From the NCBI GenBank assembly GCA_900088475.1, contig FLMG01000613.1, positions 1-52,423 of the forward strand: a DNA stretch of 52,423 nucleotides, in the 5' to 3' direction. Below, piece by piece: positions 1,891 through 42,792 of the stretch (positions within the stretch are counted from its first letter, which is position 1; each line of letters begins with the position of its first letter). A program made the position numbers and the translations under genes. The notes under the pieces are model-generated. The model was not told the DNA's origin and did not search any database. It was given only the letters and a program-made list of their open reading frames with translations. The stretch comes from Hyphochytrium catenoides (Eukaryota; Protista; Hyphochytriomycota).

Positions 1891-4800
1891 TCATGCGGCG
1901 AACTGCTTGATTTCATGAACGCCAACGACGTCCTGGATCTGGTCGCAAACATCCTGAATGGCTCTCGGTGAGGCCTCAGGGCTCTCTAACATACATTCAT
2001 ACACTGCAATGCCATTCCGCATCCGAATGGACGACTGCAAGATTCGCACTTGCGAGTTCTTTCTGATTGCCTCCGTGATCTCAACCAACAAGTTGGGATC
2101 CTCTCGCCCTTCTACCCGCAAGATGACAGCTTTCCCTGTGGCCAAGGCGTCGCCAGCCTCTCTTCCTGCCTCCTTTGCTCCTGCGCCCTCCCGATCTGCG
2201 ATCAGCTGTAAGACTTGAAAGCGCTGGGGGTTTAGAGATGGAGAGAGGTGGAGATACTCGCATTGTGCGAGGACTTCTGTGGCAGATGGTCGGGCAGTTG
2301 GGGTCTTAGAGAGAAGCTGCTGAATGAGAGAGAAGACAATCGGATGCTCGTCTTTCACTTTTGCCGTCACAAAGTCGGGAAAGGATCCCAAGCGAGCTTG
2401 GCGAAGTACCTATATATATGGGAGCAGGAGGGCACAGGCTCAGCACCAAAGCTAATCAGGAAAAGGCGAGTAAGGGAATAGAAGCACGACCGCAGGTATT
2501 CAGAAGCAAGACGAAGAAGAAGCCAGATGAGGAGGAAGAGTGAGAGGAAAAAAGCAAAAGAGATGGACGACGCACGCCCTGCCATTGGCTAGGACTTCAA
2601 CATCTCGCGAAGATACCGGACGGAGCGTGGATGAAAGGCATCATGCACCAGACGTCCACACTCACCTGTATCCTCTCCATGGAGGTTGTGAAGCTGGGCA
2701 GCGAGAGCTCAAGGAGAATCATACCCAGCGAGTACATGTCCGTCTTAGAGTCATATGCTCTCTCCGCCATCTGCTCAGGAGACGCGTACAGAAGAGTCCC
2801 AACGCCTGCCGTGTTGTCTCCTTTCAGAAACATCCTCTTGCTATCTCTCTTACTCCCACCGGCTGCTCTAGAGGAAGAACTTGGAGAGAGAGAAGAGGGA
2901 AGATGGTCTACATGCCTAGAAAGGCCAAAGTCTCCAAGCTTAACGCTTCCTTCCTCTCCGTCCCCTGCCATGAAGACGTTAGCCGGCTTCAGATCTCTAT
3001 GAATCAACCCACAGTGGTGCACATGCTGCAGCGCCCGAGCGATTTGGACAAATATCCGTATGCCAGCCTTAATATTAGCGCCCTGCCGGTCCGGAGATGC
3101 CAAGTAGTCGGTCAATGTCTTTTCTGAGCAGAACTGCATCTGAATGTAGAGGAGAAGGTCGTAGACTGTCGGAGGACGTCGAGCTTCTCTCTTTCTCTCT
3201 CTCTTCTCTTCTTTCCTTGAAGCCTGTCCTGCATCTTGGCAACCAGCGCCAGAGAATGGCTGTGTGTTTGTCTGCTGAACCTCAGGAAGAGAGAGTGAAA
3301 AGCAATCCTCCCTTCCTTTGGACGATCTTCTTTCTCCCTCGTTCCCTTCTTCCTCTTCAAAGCAGTCTTCTTTTCCTTCCGCTTTGACTGACTCTTCACT
3401 AGCTTCCTCCCATTCAAAGCCAGTCTCTCCTAACGAAGGAGAGTCAAAAGTGTGCATCGCAGAGTCATCTTCCAATCCTTCCAGGTGCTTCGCGTCAGAC
3501 TTAAGAAACCACCCGTGGATGTCCTGAAGACTGCTGGGCCAGAAGCCTTTCCTTTTTCCTTTCTGTGCTCCTATCTCTCTATTTTGCTTCTCTTTTCCTT
3601 GCGAAATGGCGGAAGCAGAACGCGCGGCGGAAGGAGAGCGGCTTTCGTCCTCTTCTATTTCATCTTTTCCATCCACAGTGTAGAGATCTGCAGTCTCAGT
3701 TAACAAAGGGACAGAAGAATCAAGAGTGCTGCCGCCGCCTCTCCCTCTTGCTCCTCCGCCCACGCCGTCTTCGACGTTCTCTAACCAGGCCTGATAGTAC
3801 CGCACAATGTTGGGATGGTCGAGAAGGGCCAGAATCTTGACCTCTCTTAGAACCTACACGAGTCGAGAAGAAGAAAGGACAAGTAACATGTCAGTGAGGG
3901 TGACTTTGCATGCGAAGAGACTGTGAACCACCTAAGAGAAAGAGGGAACGCAAGGATAAGGGCCCCACCAAGTAGACAAAAGCCTTAAATACGAAGGTGT
4001 GAGAGCCACGAAAGTACTAGACGGCAGAAGAAGAAAATGTGTATGTGTGTGTGTGAGAGAGAGAGAGAGAGGAAGGATAAGAGAGTAAATGCTTCCGAGT
4101 ACCTTTTCCAGCTTAGGCTTCCAGTGCTCAGCGCTTGACAATCGCACCTTCTTGACCGCATACTGCCTACCATCAAGCCTGTTTCTAGCCAGAACTACGT
4201 GACCGAACCCTCCTTTTCCCAAAACAGAGAGCTCTTCAAACTCGTTCAGATATCTCAAAGAGCAGACAAAGGGAATTGCCGGGTCTGATGAGGATGAAGA
4301 AGGCGGCGGCGGAGACGCTCTTCTCTCCTTCTCTTTGCCACCTCCTGCTGAAGAGCCATGCTGTTGTTGAGAAGGAGGAGAAGAAGAAAGAGGCGCTGTA
4401 GCGCTCTCCAAACTCCTTAGACTGGGCGTAAGGCTTTTTCTTCTTTCCTTCTCATTAGAACTGAAAGCAGCACTCTGCCGACCCAACTTCTTAGACGATG
4501 GTCTCTCTCCTTTGTGTCTCCCTGGCGTCTTATCGCTTTCTGTGCTAGTCTTCGGACGTCTTTGAAGGCACTCCCTCGTCAGTTCATCATCAGTCCATGA
4601 TCCTGCCTTCTGGTTGTCTCTGGACTCATCGTCAAGTGAATAAGAGGAGGTCGAGGACATGGACTGTCCAGTACCCTCTTCACTGACCTCTGTCACCTCC
4701 GCAGGTAATGCGCTGCTCTCCATGCTAGAAACCAACGTTGTCGCTGTGTCAGCGACTGGAAGCTTTGGCGGAGATGACTCCTCCTTCCTTCTTCTTTCTT

Positions 4801-7242
4801 CGTCCAGCTTGGCTATGGCAGACTCATATATAGCAAAAACACTGGCGGGGAGGACAAAGTCACTGTCCAGAGAAGAGTCTTCTGACAGTGGAGCAAGGCC
4901 GTCGCTTCTGGACCCTGAACTTCTCCTTCTCTCCCTTCCTTTACCCCTTCTCTCCACACCGTCTTTCCTCTCTTCCAACTTAGCGTCCGTCCTGTCGGTT
5001 TCCTTGTTCTGCTCCAGGAGATCGCGAGACGAAGAAGAGGACGATGAAGATGAAGACACTCTTCTCTTTCTCGTTCCTCCTCCGACAGTCCAGCAACGAC
5101 GCTGCGGTGATGCCAGGCCCAATCCTCCTGCTCTTGTGCTTACTGGAGGCGGTCTCCTCGTGACGAAGGAAGGTTGACCTTTATCTCTCTTCTCGTCTGC
5201 AGGTCTTTCTCTGTCTTGTGGCTCAATGACTCTTTGTAGCGCTGATCGACTTCCGAAGCTCCCAAAGCTTAGAATTCCTCCCCCAGATATAGAGAGGCTT
5301 CTCTTCCGTCTTCTCTTCTTAAGATAGGAGACAGATGAGAGATTAGCGGATCTTGGACGAGGAGGTCGAGATGGTGGAAGCAAGTCAGAGAGCTCTCTCT
5401 CTTCAGAGCCACTTTCCTCTCCAGGCCGCTGGAGACCGTCAGAGAGAAGCTCGTCCACCGTATTCCTTCTAGACTTTGAGGGCCGCGAACGATCCGAAGA
5501 ATAGGGAGATTGGTATTCTAATTCTCCTTTCTCTCTCAGAAGAAGAGAGAGAAGATCATCCCCTGGCTTCTTCTCTCCCAAGCGCTCCTTTTCCTTGAGA
5601 AGAGAGAAAAGATCAAGATCTCTGTCTCCTTCTATTACTGACTTCCGAGGAAGAAGAGGCGGTGGAAGGAAAGGAGAAGCAGCATAAAACTGGCCCCTAC
5701 TGTCACTCCAGCTGTTCCTTCTCTTCAACCTAGCGTTACTCGGTCTGGACGATGAGGTAAACAAGAGCCCAGAGGGGATGGGAGAGGCTCGAACCTCGTC
5801 CTGAGAGGATAACTCAAACCCTTCTAAGGGAGGGATAGAGGAGAAAGAGCCTCCCGTGGCTCCTCCCTGAGGAGTGCAAGGATCACACTCGGAGAGAGAA
5901 GGGGAAACTGCGCCTGTGCTTGTCAGCGAGCTCGTAGAGTTTGTCCCGGGAGAGCATGCAAGTGTCTTAAGTGCCTCCGTATCTCCTCCCAAGGGCACAC
6001 TTGTGAGCTTCTCTTCTGGTCTCCAAGTTTCTCTCACTTTACCGCCTAAGTGCTTGAAGTACTTAAAAGTCATAGACGAGACAACGCCACCTACGACAGT
6101 AGTTACGTTATTAGCACGAGGAGTCAGCTTATATATGCATAGATGCTCTGTCTCTTCACCCCTTGTGCTTAGAGGAAGAAACGCCATAGACAGATCGTTC
6201 CCAGAGTGGTCATTCGAGCGGCAAGGGAGCGCCGCCGAAAAGGAGAAGCAAAAAAGCAGCAAGTAAGAACAGAAGATACAAGAGGGGCCAAGAGAACGGC
6301 GAACTAGGAGAGAGAGAGAGAGGGGGAGAGAGAGAGAGAGAAAGAGAGAGAAGGAGAGAGAGAGAGAAAGAGAGAGGAAAAGAGAGAGAAAGAGAGAGGG
6401 AAAGAGGAAGAGAGAGAACAGCGTCGGAAGTATTGCAGAAGTCCTAGTCCACCTCACCTGCCACGACCAGGACTAGCATTGCTATGAGTACCACCCTCCA
6501 GGCCACAAAGACTCCCTCAATGTAAATCCCACCAGACTCCAGGCCGTTCTGCATGGCCAAGACCGCAATGGCTGACAGATTGCTTGCAAAGAAAACACGC
6601 GCAGCATCATCCCCTTTACTCTCTCCAGTCAATCCGCTTAACCAAATCCTCTCTCCTTCAGCATCTCTTCCTTCTCGCGTTCCAGTGACTTCTCTAAAAG
6701 GCGGTAAAACCTTGCCATTGTCACCATCAGAAAGGAAGAGCGTGTCCGGATCCTTGCCTTTCTCGTCAATATCCATCTTTTGTCCTTGTTCTAAGCGGAT
6801 GACGAGGTCTTCAGAAGGCTTTGTCGATGCATCTCTGTTCGTCACTCCGTTCACTATCCCTTTTGAGGGCCCCTGCTCGCCTTCTAGAGGACTTCCCATG
6901 GAGGAGAAGTGGTAGAGGGAGGAGGCATGGTCCTCGCCTTGAGAAGCAATGCCAAATACCGATAAGAGAGGCGAAGGAAGCTCAACCTCCCAAAGCTTCG
7001 TGGAGGTTATGGCGTCTCTTGCGATAAGAAGCCTATCGTTGTCTTCACGTCCTCTTTCAAGGATAGGGAAATGCATTGGACAAAGGCTGTCGCTGGAGGC
7101 GCAAGTAGGTTTTCTGGCCCTCACACCATTCGCAGCGTCATTCTGCACAGCAAGGAACAAAAGAGACCGTCGCAGGAGGTAAGAGGAGAAATAGCGGCTT
7201 CGACACTTGCCCTCTTTAATTAAGGCCATCCCATGTGTCTCA

Positions 7243-7288
<46 letters not shown>

Positions 7289-9136
7289 CTGTCTCTCTCT
7301 CTGTCTGTCTCTCTGTGTGTCTCTCTCTCTCTCCTCTTTCCTTTTCTCTGTGAAGCATATCTCAGGCCTTCTCACGGTCTCAGCTACGCTAGACGTACTG
7401 CCTGCCTCTTGGCCTTACCTCCATATCGTCGGGTAGAGGCTCTCCTGGAAGCTTATGCAGTACATACTCGCCCACGTTAGAGGTCCATAGCTCGCCTCCC
7501 TCAAGCGCATCTAATGCTTGCACGACGTAGTCTGTCCGGCCTATAAGAAGTTTGGAAGACGACTCTCTCTTCATCTTCTCTCTTCCTCTCTTGCCTCTCT
7601 TTTCAGCTCGTTCTCTCCTGCCTTCCGGGGTTGCGACCTGGAAGTGGTCACCTGTCTGCATATCTAACGCAACAATCTTCATGTCCTTCTTCCCCAGAAG
7701 AATCGTGTCAGCAAGACCAGTCTCCGTCGCAGACAGCGGAGTCCCTCGGTTGACTAAGTCTCTGATTGAGATCCCCAGCTTAAGAGCTTTGGGTTCGCCA
7801 CTCCTGGACAGCCAAAGACGTCGGACAAAGAGTCACAAAGCAAACTCGGGAAAGAGAGCAAAGGCCTCACCCATAGCCTGACGTGGCAAACTTACTAAAA
7901 AGCAGCAGAGGTTATAGAGACAAATGCACCTTCTAAGGAAGAGGCAAAAAGTTCAAAATGGGAGGAGCGAACAGACTGATAGAGTCGAAAAATCTGGCGG
8001 GGAAGTGTATCAAGGGAGCCTTTACCTCGTGTCGACGCTAAAGAGTGTCCCATCGAAGGCCGCAACCACTTGTGTCGCCCGTACCAGCATCTGCTAAATA
8101 ATATAGATCAGTAACCCAATAGGAAGAGCGGTAAGGACTTGAGACAGCAGCGAGAGCGGGGGAGGGAGCGGAGCAATCAAAGCTCCTTTACCCTACCTGC
8201 CGGCCCGGCACTAGCTCCTTGGTTGGACGGTTAAAGCCGTCGGGCGTGATATCAACAGTCATCCTAGCGTCCTCTTTTCCCCTTTCTTCTTCTAACTCAC
8301 TTTCTTTCTGTCGGTCAAGAGATAACATGTAAGAGGTAAAGCGCAAAGGACAAAATGACAACAGGCCCAATCAAAGATAACAGACAAGGCCCGTAGAAAG
8401 GCGGCAAGGACAATCCCGCGGAGAAAAGATCACGGGCGAAGAAGGCAAGCGCTTATGGGAACGCGTGACTGTGTATAAAGTGATACAGCTCAAGCGACCA
8501 AAACTGACCGGCACCTGCTCCGTCGACTGGTACAACGAGGTCCACAGCATGGCTCCACCCGTGTCAAAGCTCCACTTAATGCGTCCTGAGTAGATGTGGG
8601 CCCGGAGAGATGATAGAGAAAGGCAAGAGATTGTTAGAGATGGTGAAGGAGGTAGCGCTATCAGGCTGCAGCTGAGGGCACGTGCCAGAGATGAGCTGTC
8701 AGCCCTTTAGAGGGTAGCTCAACATGTCGGAAGGACGGGAGATCTAACATCGGGAGCGTGGAAAGGAGAGACTTATAGAATAGATAAACGCACACAAGGA
8801 AAGCTTGCTTTTGATGCATTAACAGTGAGAAACGCAAGGGCCGAATAAGCGGGAAGAGGACTAAAGAAGCAGCAGGATAGGTTAACTCCTTATTGCTGCG
8901 TGAGAAGGCACAGATAGACGGACCTGTCCACGCGTCAAAAGCATAGAGAATGCCTTCTAATGTTCCCGCGATAACCACATCAGGCTCACGCTGCTGCAAT
9001 GCTAGGGATCGGGATGACTCCACTATAACAGCGACGATAGGGAAAAACAGGAGCGGATGACAACGAGAGACTGGTCAAGGACAGAAGACCCAGAAGACCT
9101 ACTGCCAAGGAATGAGGGAGACAGGGATGGAGAATG

Positions 9137-9167
<31 letters not shown>

Positions 9168-9370
9168 TAGAGGGAGAGATAGAGATAGAGAGAGAGAGAA
9201 TACAGGGTTGAATAAGGCAGGTATACAGCTCACTTACCATAGTCGCTTGACTGACCGAAGTGAGACTCTTCTCTCACGTCTTCAGCGTCAATGCCGGGCA
9301 AATAGGAAAGAGAGAAGAGGCAAAAAAGAAGAGAGAGAGTATGTAGGAGCTTCCCTCTTATCGTCATCAT
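1891..9370 (-). CDS. PERK-like type I transmembrane eIF2-alpha kinase with C-terminal ACT-like domain (10 exons)
   Basis: Hand-spliced exons with GT-AG junctions and consistent phases: 9370-9238, 9022-8924, 8585-8515, 8307-8197, ~8093-8026, 7803-7419, 7142-6458, 6090-4103, 3853-2666, 2409-1891. Signal peptide [32 protein letters not shown]1/PERK-like luminal motifs: [63 protein letters not shown]: [27 protein letters not shown]. Kinase motifs intact: [50 protein letters not shown], long insert, [39 protein letters not shown]. Confidence 0.9.
6308..6417. repeat. Imperfect (GA)n microsatellite inside a kinase intron
   Basis: Direct reading; lies in intron 6457-6091. Confidence 0.85.
7245..7332. 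repeat. (CT)n microsatellite inside a kinase intron
   Basis: Direct reading; lies in intron 7418-7143. Confidence 0.85.
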
Positions 9371-9826
9371 CACTCCGTCCATAGTTTCTCTGTCTTCCTA
9401 AGTTTCCTATCACTCTNNNNNNNNNNNNNNNNNNNNNNNNNNNNNNNNNNNNNNNNNNNNNNNNNNNNNNNNNNNNNNNNNNNNNNNNNNNNNNNNNNNN
9501 NNNNNNNNNNNNNNNNNNNNNNNNNNNNNNNNNNNNNNNNNNNNNNNNNNNNNNNNNNNNNNNNNNNNNNNNNNNNNNNNNNNNNNNNNNNNNNNNNNNN
9601 NNNNNNNNNNNNNNNNNNNNNNNNNNNNNNNNNNNNNNNNNNNNNNNNNNNNNNNNNNNNNNNNNNNNNNNNNNNNNNNNNNNNNNNNNNNNNNNNNNNA
9701 ATGCAGGGCAAATATGAAAGAGAGAAGAGGCAAAGAAGAAGAGAGAGAGTATGAAGGAGGTTCCCTCTTCTCGTCATCATCGCTCCGTTCATGTTTCTCT
9801 GTCTTTCCTAAGTTTCCTATCACTCT
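9290..9826. repeat. Diverged ~127-bp direct duplication (9290-9416 and 9700-9826) flanking the N-gap at 9417-9699
   Basis: Both copies run aatgc.gggcaaata.gaaagagagaagaggcaaa ... agtttcctatcactct with scattered substitutions. Both encode the kinase signal peptide on the minus strand. Confidence 0.85.
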
Positions 9827-15692: not shown

Positions 15693-17405
15693 ATGACCTC
15701 AAAGACAGGCAATGAACACTCAGCTTCTCCAGCGTATGAAGTCTCTCAGACCCCGAGGCCTCTTCAACGTGAGTCTGTTGCTACCTCCCGCCTCAGCGCA
15801 ATGGAGGCCACGCCTCTTTCTCAAGCCATGCCTGAGGGACGACATAGTCGATGCTACTCCATACTTCGGAATCAGACTTTCCTTATCCTGGTTGGCGCTG
15901 CGCTAGGTATCTTGCTAGGCATTGCCATTAGCAATGGCCGTGTCAGCAAGGATGTTGTCTCCTGGATAGCGTTGCCGGGAGATTTATTCCTACGCGCGCT
16001 AAAGTGCGTGGTGCTACCACTTGTCTTTGTGAATGTAGTCTTGGCCGTCATTGAGATGATGGAAGTGGGGAAGGCGGTCAGCATCGGCTGGAAGACAATT
16101 GCTTTGTACACATTCACGACTCTCGTCGCTGCGATGGAAGGATTGATCTCCGTTATAGCTTTTAAGTCGATGTTCTCAAGACTTGACGTTACCTCAGGCC
16201 AAAGCAGCGCGAAGATTGTGCAGCTAACCTGTCCGAGCGATCCTAACTCCTATATGTTTGAGCAGAATGGCACTCTCTCTTGCCTATCCGCAAATACCGC
16301 GGGCCTTAATAGCTCTTTCTCCCAGTTCGAGCTTGTAGATGTAAACAAAGTCCTCGTTGTGAAGGACGTGGGACCCAAGAACGACATCTCCTTCTCTCAG
16401 ACAGTGCAGGACGGCATTTTTCGCAAGATGGTACCCTATAACATCTTCGTTGACTTCAGCGATGCTAACTTCATTGGCGTCATTGCGTTCGCCGTTGCTT
16501 TTGCTGTGGCTGCACAGTTGAGGCCCAAGAAAGAACGGGATGTGTCGGCAAGAAAGCTCCGCGTGATGGAGATCATGTCAGAGCTGAATGACATCTTCTT
16601 GGTGCTGATCAATGCAGTGATATACCTCACTGCACCTGCCGTTGTCTCTCTCATTGCTGGCGCGTTAGGACAGCGGTCCAATCTGGCAAAGGTCTTCTCT
16701 GACATTGGAGTTTTGATGGCGGCAACGATGCTGGCAATGCTCTTTCATGCACTCGTGGTCTATCCTTCTCTATTCTACATGGCGGTGAAGAAGAACCCTT
16801 TTAGCTACCTGAAGTTCCTGGTCCCCGCGCAGACCTTTGCCTTTGCTTCCGCCTCGTCCGCTGCCACTTTGCCGGTAACCATGCGCTGTGTGGCGGATTC
16901 TGGAGAGGTGCCTTCCTCTGTGGCGAACTTTGTTCTCTCTCTTGGAGCAACTATCAATATGGACGGTGGAGCCATCTACTTTCCGGTCGCCATTGTCTTC
17001 TTGGCTGTCACCTCTGGCTATGAAAGTGAGCTTGGTATTGTTTCTTACATCCTTATGGTCCTCCTGGCAACGCTGGGATCGGCAGGAGCAGCCCCTGTGC
17101 CCTCGGCTTCGTTGGTTCTCATTATCACCGCCTTTAACACAGTCTTCGATACCTCTGGGACGCCGGAAACGTTCTCTTACATCCTCGCGATTGACTGGCT
17201 TATGGATCGCTTCCGCACGGTTGTTAATATCACTGGAGACGCGGTAGTAACAAGAATGGTGACCGCGATGTCTGACCTAGACGTCCAGGCTGAAACCTTA
17301 CTTCAGGGAGATGAGAAGAGAGGAAGCATTGCCTCGCAAGTGCTTGAAGGGCGACTTAGCCGCAAGATGACTGAGCCTCAGCTGCTGCAGCATCAGCACC
17401 AGTAA
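15693..17405 (+). CDS. Dicarboxylate/amino acid:cation symporter (DAACS/SDF/SLC1 family), probably a glutamate/aspartate transporter
   Basis: Intronless 570-aa ORF with family motifs PGDLFLRALKCVVLPLV, FAFASASSAATLPVT, LGATINMDGGAIY, LGSAGAAPVPSAS and LAIDWLMDRFRTVVNITGD; multiple TM segments. Confidence 0.95.
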   Translation: MTSKTGNEHSASPAYEVSQTPRPLQRESVATSRLSAMEATPLSQAMPEGRHSRCYSILRNQTFLILVGAALGILLGIAISNGRVSKDVVSWIALPGDLFLRALKCVVLPLVFVNVVLAVIEMMEVGKAVSIGWKTIALYTFTTLVAAMEGLISVIAFKSMFSRLDVTSGQSSAKIVQLTCPSDPNSYMFEQNGTLSCLSANTAGLNSSFSQFELVDVNKVLVVKDVGPKNDISFSQTVQDGIFRKMVPYNIFVDFSDANFIGVIAFAVAFAVAAQLRPKKERDVSARKLRVMEIMSELNDIFLVLINAVIYLTAPAVVSLIAGALGQRSNLAKVFSDIGVLMAATMLAMLFHALVVYPSLFYMAVKKNPFSYLKFLVPAQTFAFASASSAATLPVTMRCVADSGEVPSSVANFVLSLGATINMDGGAIYFPVAIVFLAVTSGYESELGIVSYILMVLLATLGSAGAAPVPSASLVLIITAFNTVFDTSGTPETFSYILAIDWLMDRFRTVVNITGDAVVTRMVTAMSDLDVQAETLLQGDEKRGSIASQVLEGRLSRKMTEPQLLQHQHQ

Positions 17406-18357: not shown

Positions 18358-21300
18358 CTACACAGCTGCGGACGTAACGCCAGCTGCTGGCGCGGTGTTT
18401 CCTTTCCGAGACTTGAGCCAGCAAGTGCCACCATTGTAGCCACTCCATGAGAATGCTCCACAGCCTGTTGTTCCTCTGCAAATGGCGCAGCACTCCTCCG
18501 GGGCCGTGCCAGGAACTCCTCTGAGGTCGTTGCCGATGTAGTCAACTCCGACTTCTAAAGCCTTACACTTGTAGACCCTACCAGAGGTGACACCAGCTAC
18601 GGTGACGCCACTGCCTTTTCCTGCCTTGAGGAAGCACGTCCCTCCCTGCCAGGCAGACCAGCTGTACGCATTGCATGCGGTGTTTGCATTGCAGGCCGCA
18701 CAGCAGCCCGAGGCACTTGCACTAAGTACCTGAGCTACATTGGCCCCTGTGTAGTCAATGCCAGCCTCCAGGGGATAGCAACCAGTTCCTGAAGGTGGAG
18801 GAGTGGGAGCGGGTGTAGGAGCAGGAGTAGGTGCAGGAGGGGTTCCACCATTTAGGACGGCAGAGGTAACGCCAGGTACTACGTTTGTTGCCCCCTTTCC
18901 AGTTTTGAGCCAGCACGTCCCGCCTTCATAGCCACTCCAGCTAAAGGCCTTACATCCCGCAGTAGCTGCACAGATTGCACAGCAACCCGCTGGTGCTGAG
19001 CTTTTCGCTGCGCTGAGATCGTTTGCTACATAATCCACACCAACTTCGAGGGCACTGCATTGGGTCGGTGGAGGAGTTGGAGGGGTTGTGGGAGCGAGTG
19101 TAGGTGCAGGAGTAGGTGCAGGCGTAGGAGGAGTGGTTGGTGCAGGTGTAGGGGACGTCGTCGGAGCGGGTGTGGGGGTTGGAGGAGTTGTAGGAGCCGG
19201 AGTAGGAGATGGGGGTGTCCCGCCGTTGAGCACTGCAGAAGTGACGCCAGGAGCAGCTTTGGTAGTTCCTTTTCCTGTTTTGAGCCAGCAAGTGCCACCC
19301 TCATAGCCGCTCCAACTAAAGGCCTTACATCCCACAGTAGCGGCACAGATGGCACAGCAGCCCGTTGCTGCTGGGCTCTTCGCAGGGCTTAAGTCGTTAT
19401 TCACGTAGTCCACGTTAACCTCTAGGGCGCTACATTGAGAAGGAGGGGGAGTCGGAGGGGTGGTTGGAGCTGGAGTCGGAGTAGTAGTTGGGGCCGGTGT
19501 CGGGGTAGGAGGTGTCGTAGGTGCCGGTGTCGGGGTAGGAGGAGTTGTTGGCGCTGGTGTAGGGGCAGGAGGTGCTCCAAGGACGCCAGAGACCATACCG
19601 GCCCCAGGGACGGTGGCTCCTTTTCCGGTCTTCAGCCAGCACGTGCCTCCGTTATAGTTACTCCAAGTGAAGGCTCCACAGCCCGCCGTCGCAGCGCAGA
19701 TTGCACAACAGCCACCAGAAGTGGCGCTAGGAGCTCCCTTGATGTCGTTGTTCACATAGTCAACCCCAATTTCGAGGGTACCGCACTGGGGAGCAGGAGG
19801 CGCCGTCGTTGGCGGTGTAGGAGGTGGGGTGGGAGGTGCAGTGGTCGGAGTGATAACAACCACAGAGGCTGCCGAAGCACCTGGAAGTGCGACAGCTGCT
19901 CCCTTTTGGCTCTTCAGCCAGCAAGTTCCTCCGTTGAAGCCGGTCCATACAAAGGCCTTGCAGCCAGTGGTCTCCTTGCAATCCGCACAGCACAGATCAG
20001 CGCTAGCTCTCTGGGTATCCTTCAAGTCATTTCCTGGGTAGTCCACATCTTTCTCGAGAGCTGAACATGTGGTAGGAGGAGGAGTTATTGGCCCATCCTT
20101 GAGCTTTCCAGAGATAGTGCCTGGCTTTGCTACAGGGGTGGCTCCAGCAGCAGCAGCGCCCTTGAAGTAGCAGACATTCTCAAACCACGTCCAAGCAGCG
20201 CAACCGGCAACCTTCTGACACTGACTGCAGCACTCGCCTGGAGCCATATCCTTCCCTACGACCTGCTGGCCAGTACCATCAATGAGGTCGAGGCCAAAGA
20301 TGTCCATTCCCTCGAAGATATTGCAAGCACCATCAATGACGCCTGTTAGATGGTCGGAAAGCGTTAGATAAGCTCAAAAAGAACAAGGCACACGACGGCA
20401 ATGATCATAGCACGGAGAAGATAGAGCGGATGCAAAGGGAAGGAGAGGGAGAGAGTCTTCTTATAAGGCAGAGAATTTGAGCTTACCGCCTGCACAGGGG
20501 TTGCCCACATGGTTGCAGTTCTGTGGATACATGCAGAGTTCATCGGTAGCCTCCAGGCCCGAGGGGTTCTTCGCTGAGAGTTGAATGCAGTACCAGTAGG
20601 TGGCGGTCTCACATCCCAACGGAGCAAATGTGACGCTGGTGGACTTATCAGTGGAAACAAGTGCCTTCTCTTGCTCTAGATGCGTGTGAGCGTCGTGGTG
20701 GAGAATCACTCTCAGAGTGGTTGAGACCTTAGATAGCTCGTGATTAGCGTCGGAGACGGTGTAGCCAACGGTGTAGCGAATATCCTGAAGTCCAGGAGGA
20801 TAGAGACAATTCTTCTCTGGCTGCGTCAGCGTCGCCACAGGTGGAGCATCGTTCAAAGTGACTACTAAGCTCGTTGTCCCGCTCTTTCCCGCTGAGTTGG
20901 TGACAGTGAGAGTCACAGTGAATGTCTTGATGCCGGTTGCAGTGAACGTTTGAGTGGTGATCCTTGCATTGCTTGTGGCTCCATTGCCAAAGTCCCAGCG
21001 GTAGGTGAGCACTCCGTTGTTGGGGTCAGAGCTCTTGGAAGCGTCAAAGGTGACGGTAAGGGGAGAAGTTCCGTAGAGAGTTGAAGCTGTAGCAACCGCA
21101 ATAGGAGGCAGAGTTCCGTCGTTGAGCACTGCGCGCATGATGCTGCCCTTCCAGACATCGCCCTACAAGCCAACAAGAAGGACAGATTAGAAAAGAGCAG
21201 GAATGCTAGGGCTACAAAGTAACCTTGCTTACCCAGTATACACCTCCCCGCGTGGGATGAGAGGCGACGAAGACGAGATTCAGATCTCCAGCTGCATGGA

Positions 21301-34102: not shown

Positions 34103-35728
34103 ATGCTTCTCCAAGCTTATAACCTCATTCCCGAACGTATCACATTCAACGATCTCCTTCCTCTTTCTCCAATGGCATCGCAACGGCCTTCTTTCAAGAA
34201 AGAGCCGATAATACGAAGAAGGCGTCCTTTCCCTAGACCTGCGGCATCCTCTTCTGCAGATTTATTATCCGCTTCTTCTTTCTCAGAAGGAGGAGGAGGC
34301 AACAGGTCCAGCGTTGTTGCTGCCCCTTCTAGTCTAAATCCACCAGTGGCAATAGGAGCAGAAGCTAATAGAGGAGATGCTGGGCAACTGAAGGGTTCAG
34401 CGAGTGGTCCCTCCGCTTCCATTGTGCCATTATTAGGTCTCAAGACAGAGAGAGCTAGTCCCAGTCCTATTGTTCCAGCAGGAGGACGAGAAGAGTTGAG
34501 GACCTTGATGCAGCACGCAGTGTATGCTCCCGCTATTAATTCGGAGAACCCCGCGATGGCTTTCACCTCCTATCAGATGGAGCGGTCAGACTACTTAGGG
34601 AGACTGCGGGAGATTGACTTCCTTAACCAGGAACTGTGGAGGCGGGGCTTTGCTCCATTATCCCTTAGCAGTGCGGAGACTCATCTCGGCAGCACTCCTC
34701 TGTCTACAAGGACATGGAATGCGGCCCCCATGCAGCCGGAGCTCCTCCACCCACCACTGACGCCTGTGGGATCATCAGAGCTGACCCAAGAAGATATCCT
34801 AAACCTCATTGGACTGCTGCAAGAAGGTGCCAGCAGTGGTAGGGACTCTCTCTCTGCTATGGACCTATTGCAAGATGTCATCGAAGGAGACACCGAGCCT
34901 GGCGGACGTCGCAGTAGTCTCTCCATGGCTCTATCGCTGTTAGAGCGCTATGATGAGCAGGTAGATGATGAAGAGGAGAGTAGCTGTATCCACCCAATGC
35001 TCGCGAACCATGACCACCACCACCACGACCAACATGAAGACAGAGCTCCAGGACCCTCGTCAGTGCAGAATAGCAAAGGAGAAGGGACTGATGGCAACGC
35101 AACGACGGCCCTTCTCACAGCGACGTTATCTACCGTAAAGCTTGAAAGAGAGGACGAAGACGGGGATTATGACGAAGACTCTTCGGTTTTCACTCAGCCT
35201 TCGCCATATCCTTCTCCATCACCTTCTCCATCTCTTCTCTCTAGTGAAGAAGGAGGCGGCCTTGCGGCATCTATCGAGGAAGAAAAGGCAGAGGGCAACA
35301 CAAGTCAAGGATCTTGCAGTACCAGCACAACGACAAAGAAGCGTAGTCGGAGGAAGAAATGTGCCATTGAAGAATGTGTACGCAGAGCTCGCTCTTGGGG
35401 CTTTTGCAAGGCTCACTCGGAGGTAACAAAGTGCTCGTTTCCTGGATGTCAACGACAGAGTCAGGGCAACAGACTTTGTATCAAGCACGGCGGAGGCAAG
35501 CGATGTGAAATAGAAGGCTGTGACAAAGCTGCACAGAGTCGTGGGAAGTGCAAAAGCCATGGAGGTGGGGTTCGATGCCAGGTAGAAGGCTGCACAAGGA
35601 GCAGCCAGGGTGGAGGCAGATGCAGAGCTCATGGTGGAGGCCCGCGTTGCTCATTTCCAGGCTGTGCAAAAAGCGCCAGTCGATTCAAGCTCTGTGCACA
35701 GCACTCCGACAGGCCGGATGATGATTGA
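34103..35728 (+). CDS. WRKY19-like Cys/His zinc-binding repeat protein (five C-x4-C-x9-C-x2-H repeats), putative transcriptional regulator
   Basis: Intronless 541-aa ORF. Disordered acidic/Ser-rich N-terminus, basic KKRSRRKK segment, then CAIEEC..FCKAH, CSFPGC..LCIKHGGG, CEIEGC..KCKSHGGG, CQVEGC..RCRAHGGG, CSFPGC..LCAQH. The start may be the second Met (MASQ). Confidence 0.85.
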   Translation: MLLQAYNLIPERITFNDLLPLSPMASQRPSFKKEPIIRRRRPFPRPAASSSADLLSASSFSEGGGGNRSSVVAAPSSLNPPVAIGAEANRGDAGQLKGSASGPSASIVPLLGLKTERASPSPIVPAGGREELRTLMQHAVYAPAINSENPAMAFTSYQMERSDYLGRLREIDFLNQELWRRGFAPLSLSSAETHLGSTPLSTRTWNAAPMQPELLHPPLTPVGSSELTQEDILNLIGLLQEGASSGRDSLSAMDLLQDVIEGDTEPGGRRSSLSMALSLLERYDEQVDDEEESSCIHPMLANHDHHHHDQHEDRAPGPSSVQNSKGEGTDGNATTALLTATLSTVKLEREDEDGDYDEDSSVFTQPSPYPSPSPSPSLLSSEEGGGLAASIEEEKAEGNTSQGSCSTSTTTKKRSRRKKCAIEECVRRARSWGFCKAHSEVTKCSFPGCQRQSQGNRLCIKHGGGKRCEIEGCDKAAQSRGKCKSHGGGVRCQVEGCTRSSQGGGRCRAHGGGPRCSFPGCAKSASRFKLCAQHSDRPDDD

Positions 35729-41289: not shown

Positions 41290-42438
41290 TCACGTGTCAA
41301 CTCGATGGCTGTCGTGAAGCACTTCCATGACGGTCATGACCCGCTGCCTATATTGTTCGTCCTCAGTCGCGTGCTTTGCGATGAGCTTGAACTTCTTCAT
41401 GAGTTCATCATAGATCCCAGACTTTCCCCTAGACGAAAGGGCTGCAGTATCTTCGATCTCCCGAACTACCTCTTCCTTGGATCGAGTCTTCAGGATACCC
41501 AGCTGATGATTGTGGCCATGACTAGGGACATCGTCAGCTTTGATAACCCATCCATCTGTGCCCTTTGCTCTCCATATCCGAGTCTTCCACTTGCAGCCGG
41601 TCTTTTTCGTGCCCTTGGTGGTGAGCTTGAGCTTGTGTGGATCACCCCAGCAGGAACATCGCAAAGTGATTATCGAGATCTTGTTGCCCTCACTGGACCG
41701 CCTTTCATGTCTCGTGCGGACGATTGCGAAGCCTTGCCTCGCCGCCCAGGTTCTAAGTGCAAGTATAGCCTCTTCCGACGAGTTCCATAGACCTCGAGGC
41801 ATCGGTATATTCGCATCTCGAGCGCGGCCCGCTGCCGGTATCGCTTCTCTCAGAAGGGGAAGTCTGGGATCTCTCTTATTAGGTTCCATGGAATGATTGT
41901 GGTCAAACTTGGGCATGTCAGTGGGGCGCAGTATCCATTCAGTTGCCCCCTGTGGTCTATGGACTTTCAGTCGCCACTGGCAGTTGCTCTTCTTACTCGG
42001 TCTTCGACCTACTCTTCCCAATTTATCGGCACTTCCGCCATGCTCACAGTGCAGATCTAAGGTGCAGAGCTTAGCACCCTCCGATTGACGCCGCGCTATG
42101 CGAGCTCTGCAAACCGAGAAGCCGATACCGCAAGCCCATGCGTTGATCTCGGCGGTAGCCTGCTCATCCGACTTCCAAGGTCCAGTTGGAATACCCTCAC
42201 AAAAGGCTGTCGACACCTGAGTTTCAGTTTCGTTATGCGGGGGAGCTGTGGAAGCCTCCGCCTCTTGTCTGGTGACTCCATCAGTGCTTGCTTGGGCTCC
42301 TTCAGTGATAATGGTCGTAGTGTCCTCTTGAATGACGTCGCGCTGGCTCGCAGGTATCTGTGACTTTTCCGGGGACTGCGACTCTGCCATGGAATGACTA
42401 ACTCCATTAGGCTTCCGGCGCGAGTTTCCACGTGGCAT
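41290..42438 (-). CDS. Protein with two tandem FAR1/AFT-like (WRKY-GCM1 fold) CCHH DNA-binding domains, Mutator-transposase related
   Basis: Two copies of the pattern W(A)xxxGF.....C...G.....KKxxCxW......W......HNH (AWACGIGFSV..LHCEHGG..KKSNCQWRL..DHNH and TWAARQGFAI..LRCSCWG..KKTGCKWKT..GHNH). The first in-frame ATG is at 42438. No DDE domain seen. Confidence 0.75.
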   Translation of the reverse strand: MPRGNSRRKPNGVSHSMAESQSPEKSQIPASQRDVIQEDTTTIITEGAQASTDGVTRQEAEASTAPPHNETETQVSTAFCEGIPTGPWKSDEQATAEINAWACGIGFSVCRARIARRQSEGAKLCTLDLHCEHGGSADKLGRVGRRPSKKSNCQWRLKVHRPQGATEWILRPTDMPKFDHNHSMEPNKRDPRLPLLREAIPAAGRARDANIPMPRGLWNSSEEAILALRTWAARQGFAIVRTRHERRSSEGNKISIITLRCSCWGDPHKLKLTTKGTKKTGCKWKTRIWRAKGTDGWVIKADDVPSHGHNHQLGILKTRSKEEVVREIEDTAALSSRGKSGIYDELMKKFKLIAKHATEDEQYRQRVMTVMEVLHDSHRVDT

Positions 42439-42792
42439 TGTCACTCCTTTATCGCGAGCCTGAGGACAAGCCGAGATGGAAGGACTCTTCAAGAGCCCTT
42501 TATAAGAGCTCTTCCCTGCAATGGCTGAGGCGAGGGAGAAGGATGATGCTGGGATTGAGCATCGCCTTGATCCTGATGTGGAGCTGTGATGTATGACTGT
42601 TTGATGTGAGCTTCTGATCTGCTGACCGCGGCCCGAGCCGCATCACCCGCGCTGCCGTAGACGCTTCACTAGACTCTCGCCAGCCACTATTACTTTACAT
42701 ATATACAGCATTTTCGGCCTTAGAGTCATTATGCTTCTATTACTACTGCTGTCGGTGCGTCTCAGCCGAATGGTACACCAGTTTTCTTAGTG

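Follow-up and report, generated by a model that had tools for sequence, protein, structure and literature searches.

A kinase gene on the minus strand of the 52,423-nucleotide stretch of Hyphochytrium catenoides DNA that we analysed (contig FLMG01000613.1 of GenBank assembly GCA_900088475.1, positions 1 to 52,423; hereafter the window) encodes a PERK-like eIF2-alpha kinase, the extreme C-terminus of which is formed by a true ACT-fold domain, of the RelA/SpoT type (Pfam ACT_4), located at 1894-2133. The domain is not an oddity of this one kinase; it is a conserved C-terminal module of a family of stramenopile PERK-like eIF2-alpha kinases, for which the sequences predict, from the N-terminus on, a luminal domain of the IRE1/PERK type, a single membrane helix, a linker in the cytosol, the eIF2-alpha kinase domain and, last, the ACT domain (“PERK-like” refers here to the architecture and not to a position in a kinase tree; orthology with animal PERK and an independent fusion of an IRE1-like luminal domain are both compatible with it). 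An initial annotation of the window had proposed that the last ~80 residues after kinase subdomain XI form an ACT domain, fused to a transmembrane eIF2-alpha kinase, that would sense amino acids; the domain, its fusion and its RelA/SpoT affinity were borne out by our analyses, and the proposed function is weighed below against other readings.

The C-terminal segment is a RelA/SpoT-type ACT domain

The minus-strand translation of 1894-2418 reads through ARPSATEVL and a linker of ~40 residues into the tail noticed in the initial annotation, which ends in VHEIKQFAA before the stop codon at 1893-1891. The segment thus belongs to the open reading frame (ORF) of the kinase, and the ACT part corresponds to residues 43-122 of the 122-residue tail (exact span 2133-1894). 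Upstream of it in the same exon the end of the kinase C-lobe reads GSFPDFV ... ARPSATEVL, and because a single exon without interruption (2409-1894) encodes both this kinase end and the tail, the fusion is independent of any splice. The linker motif QRFQVLQL was read by eye as the counterpart of a family stretch LLxEYTVxSLD (MAFFT isolated it by gaps in both alignments). The features of this part of the gene are as follows.

1894-2133, minus strand: ACT-fold domain, 80 residues, the extreme C-terminus of the protein (AlphaFold2, Foldseek, VIA-align and family hidden Markov model).
2130-2104 (beta1), 2091-2062 (alpha1), 2046-2017 (beta2), 2010-1984 (beta3), 1968-1933 (alpha2) and 1920-1897 (beta4), minus strand: secondary structure of the ACT domain.
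1891-1893, minus strand: stop codon of the kinase gene (translation).
2134-2259, minus strand: linker between kinase subdomain XI and the ACT domain, ~40 residues, largely of low complexity, with a predicted local distance difference test score (pLDDT) of 35-52.
1894-2409, minus strand: last coding exon, 172 residues, with the kinase C-lobe end, the linker and the ACT domain in a single open frame; acceptor AG at 2411-2410 (TAG/AG).

AlphaFold2, using an alignment of 26 sequences, predicted a beta-alpha-beta-beta-alpha-beta arrangement (in tail numbering, strand 44-52, helix 57-66, strands 72-81 and 84-92, helix 98-109 and strand 114-121) with a pLDDT of 87-96 across the domain. When this model was compared with the PDB by Foldseek, the first match was the ACT domain of the Chlorobium GTP pyrophosphokinase (3ibw, TM-score by target 0.81-0.83), and the ACT domains of PHGDH and of Mycobacterium tuberculosis Rel (6lxg) came next; the probability to solved ACT domains was 1.00, and VIA-align gave a Z of ~11 to solved ACT domains, with RelA/SpoT, PHGDH and AHAS among its matches. 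The nine best matches in the Swiss-Prot part of the AlphaFold database were all C-terminal ACT domains of RelA/SpoT proteins (root-mean-square deviation 1.4-1.6 A over ~80 residues, 16-27% identity), in which the ACT domain is likewise the last domain.

Sequence profiles pointed to the same family. The profile of 26 homologous tails matched the ACT domain of M. tuberculosis Rel (6lxg) at an E-value of 1.1e-5 and RelA (8fr8) at 0.007, in addition to 5iqr and 5kps, and ACT_4 was the commonest Pfam match among the family members (5 of the 26, best E-value 4e-5). A family hidden Markov model (HMM) was rebuilt from 36 tails with the window sequence left out to avoid circularity, and it scored the window tail at 35.9 bits (E-value 4e-10 against all six-frame pieces of the window); the highest score among 1000 shuffled versions of the tail was 8.7 bits. 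The score of the window-free model and the shuffles confirm the ACT tail, and with it the comparison to RelA/SpoT.

Several searches gave other results. The tail had no match in NCBIfam, and the ESM Atlas yielded similarities of 0.89 to MgtC C-terminal and ACT_4 clusters, which we regard as a lead only. A heavy-metal-associated domain, suggested by weak phmmer matches to the metal-binding domains of copper ATPases (E-values 0.05-0.3), which share the general fold of the tail, was rejected: the CxxC site is absent, and profile and fold searches favour ACT. The 90-residue tail, when searched against 1.84 billion representative proteins, matched a single one (P0001), which was rejected as spurious, this being a highly repetitive protein of 2504 residues with a score summed from many weak repeats. 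The true relatives are too diverged (15-27% identity) and were therefore missed by a single-sequence search.

Distribution and conservation of the ACT tail

Among 133 related kinases that were fetched from searches limited by protein length, 37 carry the ACT tail, always at the extreme C-terminus and directly after the kinase domain. They come from diatoms (Thalassiosira, Fragilariopsis, Pseudo-nitzschia, Grammatophora), brown algae (Ascophyllum, Scytosiphon, Discosporangium), oomycetes (Nothophytophthora, Peronospora) and metagenomic protists; absence from orthologues, which would have spoken against the domain, was thus not what we found. Animal HRI and amoebozoan relatives recovered by the same search have coiled-coil tails instead. 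In Aphanomyces cochlioides, no ACT tail was found beside the kinase P0061, which is probably a different paralogue. Given its conservation over diatoms, brown algae and oomycetes, the tail is probably maintained by selection.

In the 37 tails, conservation is seen at L47, R48, V49 and E50 in beta1, L58 and I65 in alpha1, I73, Q75, Y76, G77, L78 and R79 in beta2, E88 and F89 in beta3, and R118 and Q119 in beta4, so that the conserved polar residues sit on beta-strands. Strand alternation would place R48, E50, Q75, R79 and E88 on the open face of the sheet, with E50 and R79 at the sheet end that adjoins the classical ligand loop. The beta1-alpha1 loop itself is the most variable part of the domain in both length and composition: glycine is present in 18 of the 37 tails, the window has asparagine, and the oomycetes carry an insertion of 11 residues. 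The conserved glycine-containing ligand loop of classical ACT domains is therefore not a feature of the family, and the loop that the initial annotation had likened to DRPGLL is this least conserved part of the domain.

A canonical ACT start of the DRPGLL type (INSPDRPGLL) occurs in another eIF2-alpha-kinase-like protein, P0034 (489 residues, from a JGI metagenome, C-terminus cut off), where it is N-terminal, ~130 residues before the kinase. Its presence indicates that the pairing of ACT and kinase recurs in the clade, in which it may have arisen more than once.

Kinase family and membrane architecture

The solved structures closest to the kinase belong exclusively to eIF2-alpha kinases (HRI, PERK, GCN2 and PKR, E-values 9e-31 to 6e-21), and the best database matches of the kinase exon were eIF2-alpha-kinase-like proteins of stramenopiles, those with a name being EIF2AK1-like. 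In addition to these relatives, the kinase has the insert between the lobes and the motifs of the family (as read from the sequence), which agrees with the kinase type assigned by the initial annotation. The remaining parts of the gene were located as follows.

2410-2665, minus strand: inferred intron, phase 0 (GT 2665-2664, AG 2411-2410), read from the sequence; the frame and the kinase homology carry on across it.
2666-3853, minus strand: kinase exon, 396 residues, with the catalytic motifs and the eIF2-alpha-kinase hallmarks, including the long insert (Pfam Pkinase, E-value 5e-26).
3854-4102, minus strand: inferred intron, phase 0 (GT 4102-4101, AG 3855-3854).
4103-4240, minus strand: start of the kinase N-lobe (GKGGFG, AVKK lysine), at the 3' end of a long low-complexity exon encoding the cytosolic linker.
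6456-6515, minus strand: predicted single transmembrane helix, with a GTGAGG splice donor directly after it; the orthologue on scaffold L002 has a helix at the same position.
6516-8978, minus strand: exons of the IRE1/PERK-type luminal domain, with motifs at 8978-8922, 8586-8536 and 7550-7464; exon borders approximate.

The N-lobe segment at 4103-4240 matched Pfam Pkinase at residues 740-781 of an ORF of 841 residues and is homologous to P0123 and to the L002 protein. N-terminal to the kinase there is the combination expected of a PERK-type kinase of the endoplasmic reticulum (ER) membrane, namely a single membrane helix (6515-6456) preceded by a luminal domain of the IRE1/PERK type. The luminal pieces of the window matched the luminal domain of the L002 orthologue (E-values 2e-12 and 2.6e-6), which in turn matched the luminal domain of human IRE1 (2hz6, E-value 7.6e-5), so the link of the window to IRE1 is indirect; the luminal domain also gave a weak PQQ_2 match (E-value 6e-4).

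The same order of domains was found in two further sources. On the metagenome scaffold L002 the ORF with kinase and ACT domain (P0013) is directly preceded by an ORF of 545 codons in which the kinase N-lobe follows a luminal domain, a single membrane helix and a linker, and a search with the luminal half matched only L002 itself and P0123. In Pythium insidiosum (L005; GCA_001029375.2, 4578-9173) successive ORFs encode the luminal, kinase and ACT parts. The recurrence in the window, L002 and L005 argues that the combination of luminal domain, membrane helix, kinase and ACT domain, for which a search across stramenopiles had been suggested with the initial annotation, is real and a family trait. 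Four diatom-like proteins (P0124, P0125, P0130 and P0131, 857-1000 residues) combine a single membrane helix with the kinase and the ACT domain; their luminal match is weak and non-significant.

Some observations on gene models belong here. L002 (6235-9164, ENA ERZ23491423), together with L006, is the closest relative with the full architecture that was found; it stems from an AT-rich eukaryote, and its gene is called as two ORFs with a short interruption after the kinase N-lobe. What appears to be a single luminal-kinase-ACT gene in L005 is split into three models in the public annotation (5181-6248, 7001-8518 and 8568-9176). The short models P0036 and P0045 (Fragilariopsis and Pseudo-nitzschia) start at the kinase, with no membrane helix, and may be truncated models or soluble paralogues. 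In the window, a run of N (an assembly gap) at ~9410-9790 falls in the 5' part of the kinase gene or immediately upstream of that part, so that the signal peptide and the first exons are unreadable. Long CT/GA microsatellite-like tracts occupy the two introns (2410-2665 and 3854-4102) and the 3' flank (1-1900 of the window) and give rise to many spurious low-complexity ORFs on both strands.

Elsewhere in the window, ORFs encode a single-exon sodium:dicarboxylate symporter (15693-17405, plus strand), a protein with seven PAN domains (18358-20307, minus strand), a protein with five WRKY19-type zinc fingers (34103-35728, plus strand) and a FAR1 DNA-binding protein (41290-42492, minus strand), a content that is typical of oomycete-like stramenopiles. 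A coccidian (Toxoplasma-like) origin, to which the CT-rich introns had at first pointed, was discarded in view of this content and of the stramenopile database matches.

Proposed function and alternative explanations

The reading that we favour, and hold to be probable, is that the RelA/SpoT-type ACT domain, as the conserved C-terminal module of stramenopile PERK-like kinases, lies in the cytosol and regulates their dimerisation-dependent activation. A regulatory module that controls activation was chosen because the conserved residues are on the strands, the ligand loop is variable and several modes of action are on record for the ACT domains of RelA/SpoT proteins (contact with the ribosomal A-site finger, amino-acid binding, auto-inhibition and binding of the partner EIIA-Ntr~P; PMC7058999, PMC6344854). 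From the fold, homology, position, conservation and architecture described above we infer the following steps. Dimerisation of the kinase domain, which eIF2-alpha kinases require for activity, would be the step under control. The ACT domain would pair with its counterpart in a second chain or, alternatively, dock on the kinase or on a partner, and pairing or docking would use the conserved sheet face and its upper edge (R48, E50, Q75, R79 and E88 in tail numbering); either event may be gated by a small ligand. As to the input of the module, a small metabolite such as an amino acid and ligand-independent dimerisation or auto-regulation are about equally possible, each falling short of likely; a different kind of input altogether is less likely than either, and contact with a ribosome or with RNA is the least likely of the four.

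Three results weigh against this reading. The window tail scored 18.3 bits against Pfam ACT_4 (E-value 0.004), below the cut-off of 27, so that the Pfam check proposed with the initial annotation returned the expected family as the match found, at a score under its threshold. Four positions that are conserved in the family are also substituted in the window tail (Y76 to S, G77 to S, F89 to C and R118 to K), which may therefore work differently or be relaxed. Finally, the ACT region (1894-2133) and the splice junctions were not covered by any RNA: the sole RNA support for the gene was one plant metatranscriptome contig of 163 bases, covering 2227-2365, and no RNA run was listed for the 2.7-kb stretch searched. 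At the DNA level, positions 2059 and 2091 within the ACT region differ in a run with the same organism label; both changes are synonymous, which is weak support for constraint. A run with a second organism label (X5) matches parts of the kinase gene, mostly at 90-95% identity.

The missing RNA and the sub-threshold Pfam match, together with the single, spurious hit among 1.84 billion proteins, are also what one would expect if the likeness to ACT had arisen by chance or if the segment were untranslated, spliced out or otherwise a gene-model artefact and not part of the mature protein. We strongly disfavour this explanation and regard it as barely credible: the frame is continuous with kinase subdomain XI, the fold is predicted with confidence, the segment occupies the same place in 37 relatives drawn from independent sources, and the window-free HMM found it at an E-value of 4e-10, against at most 8.7 bits for shuffled tails.

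More weight has to be given to the function proposed in the initial annotation, in which the ACT domain binds free cytosolic amino acids and allosterically alters the kinase, so that folding stress in the ER lumen and amino-acid supply would be integrated. Amino-acid sensing by the tail is plausible by analogy, ACT being a classical amino-acid binding module with serine-bound PHGDH and valine-bound AHAS regulatory subunits among the structural neighbours here; the conserved E50 and R79 would lie next to the classical ligand loop, and P0034 bears a canonical DRPGLL-type ACT domain at its N-terminus. Furthermore, binding of valine, leucine or isoleucine was reported for the C-terminal regions of Rel/RelA (Fang and Bauer 2018, cited in PMC7058999). 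However, the loop that would hold the ligand is the most variable part of the family's domain, and the Asn reported, in the citation given by PMC7058999, as required by Rhodobacter Rel to bind branched-chain amino acids falls, at an approximate register, in a column of K, E, T or R; the same article cautions that amino-acid binding alone does not imply regulation. On balance we consider allosteric control by free amino acids rather unlikely, and we are similarly doubtful of the broader proposal that stramenopile PERK-like kinases directly read a cytosolic metabolite (e.g., a branched-chain amino acid) through a sensor domain of the stringent-response type. If this were true, one ER-membrane kinase would merge unfolded-protein and nutrient signals without the tRNA sensing used by GCN2.

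The tail might also act as the RelA RRM/ACT domain does on the ribosome, with a contact to ribosomal RNA or protein that would tie the ER kinase to translating or stalled ribosomes. GCN2, too, requires contact with the ribosome. The nearest relatives of the tail in both sequence and structure are RelA/SpoT ACT domains, those of ribosome-bound RelA (5iqr, 5l3p) included, and its conserved basic and acidic residues would be on the open sheet face (orientation deduced from the strand pattern), as used by RRM-like domains; the ACT domain of RelA touches the A-site finger of 23S ribosomal RNA (PMC7058999). The case is nevertheless purely analogical: RelA also requires TGS and zinc-finger domains, which are absent here, the A-site finger differs in the eukaryotic ribosome, and no aromatic RNP-like motifs were seen in the tail. 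We therefore judge a ribosomal role improbable, and regulation of dimerisation-dependent activation remains the reading that we prefer.

Novelty and significance

In the full-text literature that was searched, we found neither a description of an ACT domain on an eIF2-alpha kinase nor a characterisation of stramenopile PERK-like kinases, and the precomputed Pfam annotation of the members found lists kinase families only and misses the ACT domain. A conserved variant of the PERK-like eIF2-alpha kinase, to which a RelA-type ACT module is added, has thus apparently gone undescribed, in line with the novelty claimed in the initial annotation. The regulatory domains of eIF2-alpha kinases define the stress that each of them reads, and the ACT domain is, as far as we found, a new kind of input domain among them. 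The groups in which the tail occurs include major primary producers as well as pathogens of crops and animals.

Comparison with known systems

Animal PERK (EIF2AK3) and the protist PERK-like kinases share an IRE1/PERK-related luminal domain, a single membrane helix and an eIF2-alpha kinase domain that contains a long insert. In animal PERK the chain stops soon after the kinase domain and an ACT domain is lacking, whereas the window kinase adds an ACT domain of 80 residues after a linker of ~40 residues. GCN2 (EIF2AK4) is also an eIF2-alpha kinase with a regulatory domain at its extreme C-terminus. This domain is involved in dimerisation and in association with the ribosome. The kinase is responsive to amino-acid supply and senses uncharged tRNA and the ribosome by means of its HisRS-like and C-terminal domains. 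No GCN2 chain was present among the best 50 Foldseek or VIA-align matches of the tail.

Plant STY kinases with an ACT domain and the ACT-like domains of plant bHLH factors are likewise cases in which ACT is joined to a signalling protein. In the STY kinases the ACT domain is N-terminal to the kinase, and the kinase is not of the eIF2-alpha type. The ACT-like domain of bHLH factors is described as a dimerisation module (PMC8202348, PMC10175843).

The closest counterpart is the C-terminal ACT/RRM domain of RelA/SpoT proteins (ACT_4, PF13291; 3ibw, 2ko1, 6lxg, 5iqr), which has the same fold (root-mean-square deviation 1.4-2.2 A over 76-80 residues), gave the best profile matches, is, like the tail, the last domain of a stress-signalling enzyme and has a beta1 motif similar to that of the tail (VEA-x-D ... 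LL). The differences are that the RelA/SpoT domain sits on a (p)ppGpp synthetase/hydrolase and the tail on a eukaryotic protein kinase, that TGS, helical and zinc-finger domains precede ACT in RelA/SpoT and none of them precedes the kinase tail, that the Asn for branched-chain amino acids is not conserved in the kinase tails, and that these carry a signature of their own (QYGLR, MEF and VRQ). With the last domain of bacterial stringent-response enzymes as its nearest relative, the tail suggests a possible parallel between bacterial and eukaryotic starvation pathways.

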